From the sequence record OR608733.1: a DNA stretch of 64,000 nt; one strand, given 5' to 3'. The translations under genes and the position numbers were made by a program. Below the pieces are notes generated by a model. It had not been told where the DNA came from, did not search any database, and saw only the letters and a program-made list of their open reading frames with translations. Positions 55,861 through 64,000 of this stretch are shown here, one piece after another; the first letter of the stretch is position 1, and the number at the start of each line of letters is the position of its first letter.

Positions 55861-56919
55861 TTATTTCCAGAGTGTTTTACCAATTAGATCATTTTCTGCA
55901 ATGAATGCATCTAATTGATGTCCATAGTAAAGTAAACTATGAATTTGTTGATTTAGACGTTCTTTATTTGAACCTAAGAACATCTTGTGCTTTTCACTAT
56001 CAGGTAGCTGATCGTAAACTCGTTGGCAGTACTTCTGTGCCACAACCTTACCAGATGCAAGGAAACGATCATCACCTTCGAATAACTGAGGGATAATATT
56101 TTCATCAAGATACTTACTGATTTCAGCATCTAGATCAAAATTAATAGTGTCATCGGTTGTTGCGACAGTATCTTCTTGCTGTTCATCATTCCATGGTATT
56201 TCAGAACTTACACTATCATCAAACTGATCACTAGTTGTAGTTTTAGCTAGTTGTTCATCAAATGATGATTGTTTATTTTTCTGTTTATCACGCAGGAAAA
56301 TAATTGATTCAACAATCTCATTAACAATGATGTCTAGATCGCGATTGGTATCTACAACAATTGAACTAGGTTGATTAATTAAGCGTCCATAACCTTCATC
56401 TACTTTATTAAAGTAACTGGAACCCTTAGACTCATAATAGTCAAGACCTCGGTCGCGCATTTCAATTCGTTTTTTACGAACTTCTTCAGGAGCAGTTAAA
56501 AAGAAAGTAGCCGGTTCTGGAATAGAATGTAGTGTTCCTTGAAGAATATCCATAAATAGTTTTGATAGGTATGGATTAGTTTCTTCAAAAGGTACTACAT
56601 TAAGAGCATAAGTAGATGCAATGAAACGTTCAGTGATAACGATTTTATCATCTTTTAAAGCAGGTCGAATAATGTTTTCTACATTAAGCATCCTACCTGC
56701 ACTATGCATCAATACATCGAATTCTGGCGGACGAACTTCATCTTTAAATTCTGGCCAAATTAACATTTGTCGAATCTTTTCCGATGTAGCTGTACCACCT
56801 GGTTCACGCATTGCTACTACATCGTAATTGCGCTTACGTAGTTCCTCAACAACCATCTTTGTAACAGTTGTTTTACCAACACCTTCAGTTCCTTCGATAC
56901 ATACAAATAAACCATTCAT
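55861..56919 (-). CDS. tmk: thymidylate kinase with C-terminal extension
   Basis: FVCIEGTEGVGKTT, REPGGT, ITERF..STYA, FFL.AP. Confidence 0.9.
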   Translation of the reverse strand: MNGLFVCIEGTEGVGKTTVTKMVVEELRKRNYDVVAMREPGGTATSEKIRQMLIWPEFKDEVRPPEFDVLMHSAGRMLNVENIIRPALKDDKIVITERFIASTYALNVVPFEETNPYLSKLFMDILQGTLHSIPEPATFFLTAPEEVRKKRIEMRDRGLDYYESKGSSYFNKVDEGYGRLINQPSSIVVDTNRDLDIIVNEIVESIIFLRDKQKNKQSSFDEQLAKTTTSDQFDDSVSSEIPWNDEQQEDTVATTDDTINFDLDAEISKYLDENIIPQLFEGDDRFLASGKVVAQKYCQRVYDQLPDSEKHKMFLGSNKERLNQQIHSLLYYGHQLDAFIAENDLIGKTLWK

Positions 56920-57806: not shown

Positions 57807-58100
57807 TTAATTTACATCTTTTATCACAAAGCAACTACCATCATTAAAGACAACCTTAATTAGATTATCAGTTAATGGTCGTTTATATACAACACATTTT
57901 ACATCGGGGAGTTTAACTACTTCTTTTAAAGCATCTGGCATACCAATTAGATTAATGGTAGTTAATACTTTATTCAGTGGGCCAAGATGTGAAGTCAGTT
58001 CTTGCGCTGACTTAATCAAATCTACCATTGTTTTGTCTTTATCTACCATGCTAGTTACTCGATTTGATATATGAAGTACATACGTCACCCAGGTCTTCAC
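57807..58100 (-). CDS. hypothetical protein
   Basis: 97-aa ORF with GTG start, overlapping the upstream gene. Confidence 0.7.
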   Translation of the reverse strand: MKTWVTYVLHISNRVTSMVDKDKTMVDLIKSAQELTSHLGPLNKVLTTINLIGMPDALKEVVKLPDVKCVVYKRPLTDNLIKVVFNDGSCFVIKDVN

Positions 58101-58605
58101 CAGAGTCGATCATCTCACGAGCATCACCGATGGGAGTACCAGGGTGCTCACGCTCGGTTGCTTTAGCCACGTGTTCAATTGCAACTGGAGACCATCGAGC
58201 GGCGACAGCCTCACATACACCGATCGAATTCACTCTACGGATCATATGTGCACCAGTATCAATTACACTGAAACTGAGTTCACTAATAATTTCCACTCCT
58301 TTTAGTTTATCGATACTATCAATAACCTGCGTACTAATTAGATAATTAGCTGTATCGTTATTATACGCAAGCACTAGTTTGAAACTCATTAGGGAGTTAT
58401 CTTTATCGGTGTCCCCAGCGATTAACTCATGATTTGAAGTGAGTGTATAGATACAACTACTCTCCTGAGCAGTAATTGGTGATCCTGGTGAAGAACTATA
58501 TACACTAGGTGCATTAGCTGTATTTAGTGCAAACTTATTTACAGTGGAATTAGCGCCAGGAACTTTATAACCAATAGGTCTGGCAGTGAAAATTACAACG
58601 CTCAT
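58051..58605 (-). CDS. hypothetical early protein
   Basis: 184-aa ORF, GAGG RBS, after the promoter at 58651. Confidence 0.8.
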   Translation of the reverse strand: MSVVIFTARPIGYKVPGANSTVNKFALNTANAPSVYSSSPGSPITAQESSCIYTLTSNHELIAGDTDKDNSLMSFKLVLAYNNDTANYLISTQVIDSIDKLKGVEIISELSFSVIDTGAHMIRRVNSIGVCEAVAARWSPVAIEHVAKATEREHPGTPIGDAREMIDSGEDLGDVCTSYIKSSN

Positions 58606-58650
58606 TGTGATTCCTCTTTACTAGATAGATGGTTTCCTAATTACACACTA

Positions 58651-58682
58651 GTAATATAAATCTCAAATTTTTTTTAATACGA
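58651..58682 (-). promoter_or_regulatory. phiKZ-type early promoter
   Basis: TCGTAT-N18-TATATTAC. Confidence 0.85.
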
Positions 58683-58688
58683 AATAAA

Positions 58689-58706
58689 GCCTCCCCGAAG
58701 GGAGGC
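58689..58706 (-). terminator. intrinsic terminator
   Basis: GCCTCCC-TTCG-GGGAGGC followed by TTT. Confidence 0.85.
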
Positions 58707-58713
58707 ATTTATG

Positions 58714-59406
58714 TCAATTACCACTATAGGTACCTTCAGTACCTTGTTCTTTACGTCTTACGAGGCGTTGATGAATTGCACTAAGAGCACGGTCCATTGA
58801 ATTAATCACTACCTGATTCTCTTCACATGCAAATGGGCCTGCTTGATAACCTTCAAATAAATCTTTAACGATTTTAAGTAGACAGTCAGCAGTTAGGCCA
58901 TTTACACCAACTTCTGGAACAAGTCCATTCTGCATTAGGATAACACATTCAGTCAGATTATCACCAGGCATAGCAGCTGGGTTAGTCTGAGCATTATAAC
59001 CAGTTACCACATAACGTTTAGTTGCACCTGATTTCTGATCAATACCACTTGCTTCAATATTTAGACCATTTTCATCAAAATGTTCATGGCCATAAATACC
59101 TTGCATAGTTACCCATCCACCATCTTCTTGATAAATCCAATCTACCCCATTTACATGATAAGTATCACCTGGTTCAGGGTCAGTTGGAAGATCTTTAGTA
59201 GTGGTTAATGCACGGATACGCGCATATTCTTCAATTGCAATTTGTACATCAGTTGCAGTAATTTTCTTCTCAGGTTCAGTAGCTTCATCTTGTTGAGACT
59301 TATCGCTACCTTCCTTTTGATCATTATCCATATCGGAAGAATCTACTGTACTTTTAGCTTCTTTACTTTCTAAGGAAGCTAACCACTCAAGATTAGGTTT
59401 AGACAT
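58714..59406 (-). CDS. Tad1-like (anti-Thoeris/CBASS signal sponge) domain protein with N-terminal extension; probable minor capsid protein (gp184-like)
   Basis: C-terminal MQNG.V.EVGVNG...LL.IV.D..EGYQAGPFAC.EN...AL...R..R...G.EGT matches the Tad1 pattern; start moved to ATG 59406 (GAGG RBS). Confidence 0.75.
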   Translation of the reverse strand: MSKPNLEWLASLESKEAKSTVDSSDMDNDQKEGSDKSQQDEATEPEKKITATDVQIAIEEYARIRALTTTKDLPTDPEPGDTYHVNGVDWIYQEDGGWVTMQGIYGHEHFDENGLNIEASGIDQKSGATKRYVVTGYNAQTNPAAMPGDNLTECVILMQNGLVPEVGVNGLTADCLLKIVKDLFEGYQAGPFACEENQVVINSMDRALSAIHQRLVRRKEQGTEGTYSGN

Positions 59407-59413
59407 ACTTACC

Positions 59414-59719
59414 TCAATAAATGAAACCACCAATGTAAAGTGACACTACTACATCGGCAACCCGAGGGTCTTGTGAATATTTAGATTTGACTAGTTTAAT
59501 AAGTTCGGCTCGATTTTTAATGAAGCCTAGTTTCTTATTATCAATTTCTTCAGCTTTAATTAGGAAGTCATCTAACTTCTTCTTACTACCCAGTAAATTA
59601 ATCACCATTTGATCAATAACTGCATTAGAATTTGATAGTTTAGTTAATTCTTGTTCAAAAACTTCCTTACGTCCTTCTGATCCAATTAAAGCTAGACCGA
59701 TCTTTTTAAGTAGAGACAT
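59414..59719 (-). CDS. hypothetical helical protein (gp183-like)
   Basis: 101-aa ORF. Confidence 0.8.
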   Translation of the reverse strand: MSLLKKIGLALIGSEGRKEVFEQELTKLSNSNAVIDQMVINLLGSKKKLDDFLIKAEEIDNKKLGFIKNRAELIKLVKSKYSQDPRVADVVVSLYIGGFIY

Positions 59720-59777
59720 GTTAATTACCTATTACATTGGTTTAAGAATGGTTACAATAAATAACTATTCCAAGTAT

Positions 59778-64000
<4,223 letters not shown>

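Follow-up and report, generated by a model that had tools for sequence, protein, structure and literature searches.

Phage proteins of the Tad1 family are sponges that take up the gcADPR of Thoeris, as well as some cyclic dinucleotides of CBASS, in a pocket located at the dimer interface. Gene 184 of phage phiKZ joins a domain of this family to a protein of the capsid interior, which raises the question of what an immune-signal sponge does in a phage head, how it gets there, and which signals it can absorb. The analysis covered a window of 64,000 nucleotides from sequence record OR608733.1, in which the open reading frame starts with an ATG at 59406 and ends with a stop codon at 58714–58716 (sequence and ORF table). 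Bases 58000–60000 are 100% identical to phiKZ AF399011 and to ~20 close relatives; the window is a phiKZ-type genome. The frame is annotated in AF399011 as PHIKZ184, a ‘structural protein’, and its product is identical in 230 of 230 residues to chain I of PDB entry 8y6v, the phiKZ capsid cryo-EM entry, where it is named ‘gp184’. The gene lies downstream of genes 181 (tail-associated endolysin), 182, and 183 and upstream of genes 185–188. Its ribosome-binding site overlaps the TGA stop of gene 183 (59414–59416), an overlap that suggests probable co-translation of gene 184 with genes 182–183, and an intrinsic terminator follows the gene (three terminator-like sites were found, against 0.6 expected). 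All features are collected in Table 1.

Much of the answer is in print: gp184 as a packaged, injected Tad1 sponge is already known, and the present analysis adds no new biology. Its modest additions are a residue-level prediction of specificity, a domain boundary, and a comparison of architectures. Yang et al. 2024 (PMC11297242) assigned gp184 to the inner vertex-binding complex, with five gp184 anchors per vertex, and reported its processing by gp175; less of the protein was modelled than the proteolytic product contains, a difference explained as ‘likely due to flexibility’. Fossati et al. 2023 (PMC10449902) loaded gp184-3xFLAG, which carries a C-terminal tag, into particles and followed its injection into translation-blocked cells by western blot. 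AntiDefenseFinder, described by Tesson et al. 2024 (PMC11724313), finds one anti-defense gene in phiKZ, namely Tad1. In the work of Chan et al. 2025, orf184/tad1 was non-essential and competition-neutral in TnSeq, the structural partners gp28/91/119 were essential, and in the model stated there the N-terminus of gp184/Tad1 is wedged in the capsid, while the head protease releases the C-terminus for injection. The same model is repeated in a review of 2026 that cites Li 2024. The original prediction for this locus, that gp184 is one of the minor proteins of the inner capsid and that it is a sponge packaged in the head and delivered at injection, agrees with these studies and with the identity to chain I of 8y6v, though the sponge had already been published.

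Table 1. Features of gene 184 and of its product. Positions are those of the window; counts refer to the rows of a 171-row family alignment.
Feature	Position	Strand	Residues of gp184 or equivalence	Details
phiKZ gene 184	58714..59406	minus	230 aa + stop	probable precursor of a Tad1 sponge that is packaged in the head and injected
Ribosome-binding site GAGG	59412..59415	minus		5 nt upstream of the gene 184 ATG
Leader MSKPNLEWLASLE	59368..59406	minus	1–13	ends in S-x-E prohead-protease motif (SLE-13)
Acidic low-complexity linker/propeptide	59227..59367	minus	14–60	motifs SKE-16, ATE-44, AIE-59
Capsid anchor	59083..59226	minus	61–108	short helix and small beta module; ends in GHE-108
Tad1 domain	58717..59082	minus	109–230	antiparallel sheet of three strands, two long helices, and GTEGT lid at the C-terminus
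Intrinsic terminator GCCTCCC-TTCG-GGGAGGC, then TTTATTT	58689..58706	minus		strong hairpin, 8 nt past the gene 184 stop
gcADPR / 2',3'-cGAMP pocket			CbTad1 F82 = gp184 Y187	F or Y in 162/171
gcADPR / 2',3'-cGAMP pocket			CbTad1 N92 = gp184 N197	N in 170/171
gcADPR / 2',3'-cGAMP pocket			CbTad1 R109 = gp184 R214	R in 169/171
gcADPR / 2',3'-cGAMP pocket			CbTad1 R113 = gp184 R218	R in 163/171
Cyclic-trinucleotide phosphate contact			CbTad1 R90 / CmTad1 R88 = gp184 E195	R in 16/171
Cyclic-trinucleotide phosphate contact			CbTad1 T97 / CmTad1 T95 = gp184 N202	T in 21/171
Hexamer contacts			CmTad1 K96, Q98, E99, M102, W103, K106 = gp184 S203, D205, R206, S209, A210, Q213	

The C-terminal domain of gp184

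Pfam and NCBIfam scans of gp184 and of its C-terminal domain returned nothing useful. WASH-7_C, the lone Pfam line for gp184, was rejected as a chance match (E 0.22), and the PHROGs assigned to the protein are solely families of unknown function (phrog_22140, 23843, 2428). Direct comparison with known structures is more informative. A phmmer search with the last 120 amino acids against all PDB sequences matched gp184 itself and six Tad1 chains only (CmTad1 8kbb and CbTad1 7uav/8kbe/8kbg/8kbh; E 5e-7 to 1.4e-6), the best E-values being 5.5e-7 for CmTad1 and ~1e-6 for CbTad1. A first profile, made of gp184 and 19 close relatives and run against 1.84 billion representative proteins, yielded a Tad1-domain family of 4,410 members (E up to 0.001), many of which are free proteins of ~130 aa. 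A second profile, built from 139 of these members, found CbTad1 at 1.7e-30 and CmTad1 at 1.1e-25 over ~115–130 residues, i.e., nearly their full length, and profile alignment places the start of the Tad1 domain at about residue 100 of gp184. Along the same lines, a tblastn search of phage genomes reaches SBSphiJ7, the Bacillus phage with the founding Tad1, as well as a gene with the annotation ‘anti-thoeris viral protein’. A word-based homologue search returned close jumbo-phage relatives only, and the canonical Tad1s were reached only with the exhaustive profile search.

The predicted fold points the same way. An AlphaFold2 model of residues 109–230, computed from a deep alignment, has a pLDDT of 93.7 and consists of strands at 8–14, 21–27, and 45–50 and helices at 65–81 and 87–112 (numbering of that model). 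Searched against the PDB with Foldseek, it gave 20 matches, all of them Tad1, with TM scores of 0.58–0.75 (most 0.69–0.75); the next match after this set has an E-value of 0.095. The original prediction, in which the last ~110 aa follow the Tad1 pattern, and which had proposed a structure search against Tad1 as its check, is borne out by the phmmer, profile, and fold results alike. A full-length AlphaFold run with 20 sequences was poor (pLDDT 55.8; TM ~0.4 and rmsd ~16 Å against Tad1 in Foldseek), so it was used only to place the 34 capsid-resolved residues discussed below, not to judge the fold. The Pfam family PF24729 (Acb2_Tad1_hairpin) did not match gp184 or its C-terminal domain even at E-values up to 10, and the precomputed matches of PF24729.3 to gp184 homologues are marked ‘weak’; this model is short, and the other Tad1 tests are stronger. 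By sequence, profile, and fold, it is established that gp184's C-terminal domain belongs to the Tad1 family.

The N-terminal half and the boundary at Glu108

The 108 residues in front of the Tad1 domain comprise a leader, an acidic linker, and an anchor module. The leader is of the kind found on ejected and inner-body proteins of phiKZ, i.e., gp93 (KLSLE-13), gp94 (SLE-11), gp95 (SLE-13), and gp97 (SLE-13), and its E13 is nearly invariant among gp184 homologues. Within the window no other protein with an SLE-13-type leader was found; gp93, gp94, gp95, and gp97 are encoded elsewhere in the genome. The prohead protease gp175 is reported to cleave gp93 at SLE-13, cutting after Glu (PMC5694885), and the major capsid protein of phiKZ is cut after Glu163. 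The linker that follows contains 14 D/E in 47 residues and lies within a stretch (residues 1–69) predicted to be disordered, with pLDDT < 50 in the full-length model; an acidic stretch is present in all gp184 homologues, although its sequence is poorly conserved. Downstream of it, a small beta module extends over about residues 64–107; its DLPTDPEPGDTY...W...GGW part is modelled as three short strands at residues 82–85, 88–92, and 98–100.

Which part of gp184 is visible in the capsid can be read from the same entry. Chain I of 8y6v has 34 modelled residues, which match the full-length model in 34 of 34 columns, with 100% identity and a TMt of 0.82; in the Foldseek search of the PDB with the 109–230 model, this chain was not among the matches. 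Since the full-length model matches the chain and the 109–230 model does not, the capsid-resolved piece must lie within residues 1–108. In print, gp184 is described as ‘mainly beta-strands’ lodged between gp86 and hexamer 1 (PMC11297242), which identifies the piece as the beta module. The N-terminal 108 residues are best explained as a head-incorporation device. The acidic, disordered linker and the small W...GGW module ahead of Tad1 had both been picked out in the original prediction, and both are real; its further suggestion, that the N-terminal extension is a packaging tag, gains support from the likeness of the leader, the capsid-resolved piece, and the occurrence of the module in phage Psa21.

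In Psa21, the protein at the syntenic place, gp249, is only 91 aa long and consists of a similar leader (...VSNE-13), a linker, and the anchor module, with no Tad1. It is 41% identical to gp184 over residues 64–107 (E 3e-12) and stops at ...GLYGH, where gp184 reads GIYGHE-108. The G-x-E at the end of the module is kept in five of the five homologues that bear it. Conversely, PhiPA3 gp217, 201phi2-1 gp280, and ~15 metagenomic relatives have a leader, an acidic stretch, and Tad1, without the beta module; these anchor-less relatives occupy the same gene neighborhood, made up of a giant protein resembling that of gene 181, a protein resembling that of gene 182, and a thymidylate kinase. Other jumbo-phage contigs (up to 252 kb) encode Tad1 as a fusion with a stretch similar to the I domain of major capsid protein of the phiKZ type. 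At least four architectures can be distinguished: leader, acidic stretch, and Tad1 (PhiPA3, 201phi2-1, and many relatives from metagenomes); the same with the capsid-wedge module added (phiKZ clade); the wedge alone (Psa21); and the fusion of Tad1 to the I-domain-like segment. As judged from these sequences, anchor and sponge are separable modules, because Psa21 has the anchor without Tad1 and PhiPA3 and 201phi2-1 have Tad1 without the anchor.

The boundary between the two modules is also the likely place of release. GHE-108 is a candidate gp175 site at which the sponge would be freed, because the Psa21 protein ends there and the G-x-E is kept in the anchor-bearing homologues. Were gp184 cut solely upstream (e.g., at AIE-59), its Tad1 domain would remain attached to the capsid wall. 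Experimentally verified cleavage sites, gp184 included, were reportedly described by Thomas et al. in 2012. Motifs of the form [SAG]-x-E are frequent in acidic sequence, and their presence alone is weak evidence. Those found just upstream of Tad1 in the anchor-less homologues were considered as evidence of cleavage and rejected, being expected by chance in such sequence.

Ligand pocket, specificity, and assembly

We compared the ligand-binding positions of Tad1 in an HMM alignment of 171 rows, made up of relatives, gp184 itself, and two crystal-chain fragments. Residue roles were taken from the preprint of Li et al. (bioRxiv 10.1101/2023.11.15.567273), which does not mention phiKZ. According to that work, mutation of CbTad1 F82, N92, R109, or R113 abolishes binding of both gcADPR and 2',3'-cGAMP, and a site for cyclic trinucleotides sits at the trimer-of-dimers interface of CbTad1 and CmTad1. 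All four residues of the first site have counterparts in gp184, one of them as a Tyr in place of Phe (Table 1), and by this alignment the gcADPR/dinucleotide pocket of gp184 is intact. The C-terminal lid likewise keeps its G-x-E-G-T motif (QGTEGTY at 221–227, corresponding to CbTad1 116–122), with G225 in 155 and T226 in 124 of the 171 rows. The lid is modelled at a lower confidence (pLDDT 58–78), as expected of a mobile element.

The second site has a different fate. Both phosphate-contacting positions, E195 and N202, and the residues equivalent to the hexamer contacts of CmTad1 are changed in gp184. With the pocket kept and these positions altered, we predict that the Tad1 domain of gp184 binds gcADPR, possibly cyclic dinucleotides, and not cyclic trinucleotides such as cA3. 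Because the CmTad1 interface residues are unconserved, the assembly of gp184 may also differ from that seen in the crystal structures. The trinucleotide site belongs to the dual anti-CBASS activity of Tad1, not to its anti-Thoeris activity.

Observations on phiKZ itself are in line with the predicted loss. When nlp1 is deleted from phiKZ and gene 184 is left in place, a cA3/NucC type III-C CBASS kills the phage, and provision in trans of Acb2, a sponge for cA3, rescues it; NucC has a modest effect on wild-type phiKZ too (Chan et al. 2025); the sensitivity of the deletion mutant fits the predicted loss of the cA3 site. The original prediction had pointed to two other substitutions, the missing His of the GA.H.Y motif and the final Arg replaced by Gln, as possible causes of altered specificity. 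Both are real: gp184 has Lys130 in place of the family-consensus His and Gln221 in place of the Arg. These two positions are variable across the family, which makes them less telling for specificity; the idea of a changed ligand range stands, in that the cyclic-trinucleotide site appears to be lost, although at E195 and N202 rather than at the residues named. It is tempting to combine these results into one broader proposal, a narrowed sponge, with its pocket kept but the cA3 site gone, and perhaps the hexamer too, within a recurrent, modular virion delivery of Tad1 in jumbo phages that takes at least four architectures. We put this forward tentatively, rating its chances somewhat below even. 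If true, a narrowed sponge would explain why phiKZ triggers cA3/NucC CBASS and needs Nlp1 to survive.

Virion delivery and comparison with known systems

The most coherent account of the locus, and one that we consider highly probable, is that gp184 is a two-part precursor in which a head-incorporation N-terminus carries a Tad1 sponge that is released and ejected before phage gene expression. The gp184 precursor would be made with the late structural proteins and taken into the prohead by its leader and propeptide, and the beta module would dock in the vertex complex. Cleaving behind the Glu of S/A/G-x-E motifs, the protease gp175 would trim the leader and most probably also cut at GHE-108, setting the Tad1 domain free inside the head. 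Ejected with the DNA, the domain would be present in the cell ahead of all phage gene expression and would bind the first gcADPR produced by Thoeris TIR proteins. In this scheme we infer the exact cleavage site, the release of the domain, its ligand spectrum and oligomeric state, and the importance of the injected dose. By the anchor route, the dose is estimated at no more than ~55–60 sponge domains per particle, or ~0.1 micromolar in a cell of ~1 femtoliter; for a stoichiometric sponge, ~55–60 anchors per head make a low dose.

The Tad1-like domain might instead be a capsid-internal building block or cement that binds no immune signal and contributes to head stability only. Such a structural reuse, which the original prediction had also raised, would suit a protein that belongs to the vertex-binding complex, the annotation of several Bacillus phage homologues as ‘putative structural protein’, and the divergence of the trinucleotide site and hexamer contacts. 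It is nonetheless very improbable: the capsid map resolves 34 residues only, and the Tad1 domain is invisible in it; the four gcADPR/dinucleotide residues are kept and nearly invariant; and the two modules occur apart, the anchor without Tad1 in Psa21 and Tad1 without the anchor in PhiPA3 and 201phi2-1. Moreover, gene 184 is dispensable, in contrast to the essential gp28/91/119, which fits an accessory counter-defense role rather than a structural one.

The main rival to an injected sponge concerns timing and dose, i.e., that gp184 acts mainly after new synthesis, its packaging being incidental or confined to a few copies with no measurable effect. The low number of anchor sites and the resulting concentration favor this possibility, as does the position of gene 184 at the end of the structural operon with its own terminator, by which its product is probably abundant among the late proteins. 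Thoeris and CBASS signaling, however, starts before late phage proteins accumulate. Conservation of the leader, of the processing motifs, and of the synteny with virion genes in phiKZ, in PhiPA3 and 201phi2-1, and in metagenomic relatives speaks for selection on packaging, and the C-terminally tagged protein has been directly observed to be injected (PMC10449902), leaving action mainly after synthesis unlikely. A Tad1 domain that is not cut off at Glu108, and acts inside the head or is freed when the capsid is disrupted, with the injected species a minor one, is quite improbable as well. It could draw on the modelled part of gp184 being smaller than the proteolytic product in the capsid study (PMC11297242), but it is at odds with the demonstrated injection (PMC10449902), with the published reading of a liberated C-terminus (Chan et al. 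2025), and with a G-x-E that, in every homologue bearing the anchor, falls precisely on the module boundary, where the Psa21 protein ends.

A virion-loaded sponge, as preferred here, would solve a problem of timing, for Thoeris and CBASS can fire before any phage protein is made, and phiKZ hides its DNA, but the cytoplasm stays exposed to such immune signals. In practical terms, the analysis offers a residue-level prediction of the signals that can be absorbed and, in Glu108, a boundary for the design of constructs. A separable head-targeting part could be useful for loading other cargo into jumbo-phage heads, and separable modules aid the search for further packaged counter-defense proteins.

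Among known systems, the closest to the C-terminal half of gp184 are the Tad1 of SBSphiJ7, the CbTad1 of a Clostridium botulinum prophage (7UAV/7UAW/8SMD/8KBE), and CmTad1 (8KBB). gp184 shares with them the antiparallel sheet, the two long helices, and the lid, a pocket lined by an aromatic residue, Asn, Arg, and Arg, and the motifs QNG, GVNG, FQxGPF, EN, and GxEGT. It departs from them in its 108-residue head-targeting extension, the characterized Tad1s being free proteins of ~125–140 aa; in Glu195 and Asn202, which stand where the trinucleotide site has Arg and Thr; in S209, A210, and S203, which replace M102, W103, and K96 of CmTad1; and in being delivered by the virion, whereas the other Tad1s are made early. 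Acb2 (anti-CBASS 2) also works by stoichiometric sequestration of cyclic nucleotides and has the hairpin domain common to Tad1 (PF24729 Acb2_Tad1_hairpin), but Acb2 binds cA3 and gp184 aligns with Tad1 structures; no Acb2 chain was among the gp184 matches in the PDB phmmer, profile, or Foldseek searches.

The N-terminal half has its parallels in the phiKZ head itself. Like gp184, the proteins gp93, gp94, gp95, and gp97 have a leader ending in SLE-11/13, are processed by gp175, packaged in the head, and injected, and in gp93, too, an N-terminal piece is woven into the capsid while a C-terminal part is released. Unlike gp184, which carries a known counter-defense domain, they have a helical PF12699-type domain without an assigned activity. 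A functional parallel is the IPI* of phage T4, a small anti-defense protein with a short N-terminal capsid-targeting sequence that is removed after a Glu by the prohead protease. Injected with the DNA, IPI* blocks a host defense, the restriction enzyme GmrSD, before phage genes are expressed. It differs from gp184 in being a protein inhibitor of an enzyme, in having no anchor module, and in its unrelated sequence.

N-terminal extensions and capsid-like segments

The sample for counting extensions comprised the top 150 profile-search matches (P0021–P0167), and 168 closest Tad1-family representatives were counted. N-terminal extensions of at least 60 residues occur in 75 of these representatives (about 45%), the longest reaching 475 residues, and 22 carry a C-terminal extension of more than 20 residues. 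Most extensions scanned had no Pfam family match; one extended representative contains a Phage_gp49_66 (N4 gp49) domain.

In a Pfam scan of 46 N-terminally extended Tad1-domain proteins, seven, among them P0102, P0114, P0103, P0081, and P0095, begin with a segment that matches PhiKZ_MCP, the family of the phiKZ major capsid protein gp120. The matched span, profile positions about 142–270, corresponds to gp120 residues about 243–371, which make up the N-terminal half of the capsid I domain; over gp120 residues 265–331, identity to P0102 is 36%. Such a segment may represent a further route by which a sponge is attached to a jumbo-phage capsid, or it may be a reused fold.

In two relatives that lack the gp184-type β module, the Tad1 homologue is followed, four genes further downstream, by a 373-aa gene whose match to PhiKZ_MCP (profile 176–331) scores 26 bits, below the cut-off of 27. 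By this weak match it encodes a further I-domain-like protein near the Tad1 locus.

Features located in the window and at the compared loci
Feature	Location	Strand	Length	Description
P0102	L008:8001-9455		484 aa	PhiKZ_MCP-like start and Tad1 domain; 252 kb metagenomic contig
373-aa gene	L003:7902-9023; L004:7902-9023		373 aa	Weak PhiKZ_MCP match
Pseudomonas phage Psa21 gp249	L006:2357-2632		91 aa	Leader, linker, and capsid-wedge module, all gp184-type, nothing else
phiKZ gene 188	window 55861..56919	(-)	352 aa	Thymidylate kinase ORF
Gene 183 TGA stop and gene 184 GAGG ribosome-binding site	window 59412..59416	(-)		Stop lies inside the ribosome-binding site

The anchor module alone and the gene 184 neighborhood

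The capsid-wedge module also occurs by itself: Psa21 gp249 ends in GLYGH, coinciding with the module boundary of gp184, and no Tad1 domain was found downstream of it at the Psa21 locus. Either the phiKZ lineage gained Tad1 or Psa21 lost it.

Within the window, the small gene 183 (101 aa) is spaced 7 nt from gene 184, and this spacing, together with the placement of its stop codon, suggests that translation of gene 184 is coupled to that of gene 183. Gene 188, whose position is kept in relatives, combines an N-terminal kinase-like part with an acidic extension that makes up the C-terminal ~150 residues.

Tad1 homologues annotated as structural

Among tblastn matches in phage genomes, short Tad1 homologues of several non-jumbo myoviruses, namely Bacillus phages Bcp1, BCP8-2, PK16, JBP901, CM1, and BC-T25 and Xanthomonas phage Xoo-sp15, are annotated as ‘putative structural protein’ or ‘structural protein’. 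These labels may have been copied from record to record; if they derive from virion proteomics, Tad1 packaging may extend beyond jumbo phages.
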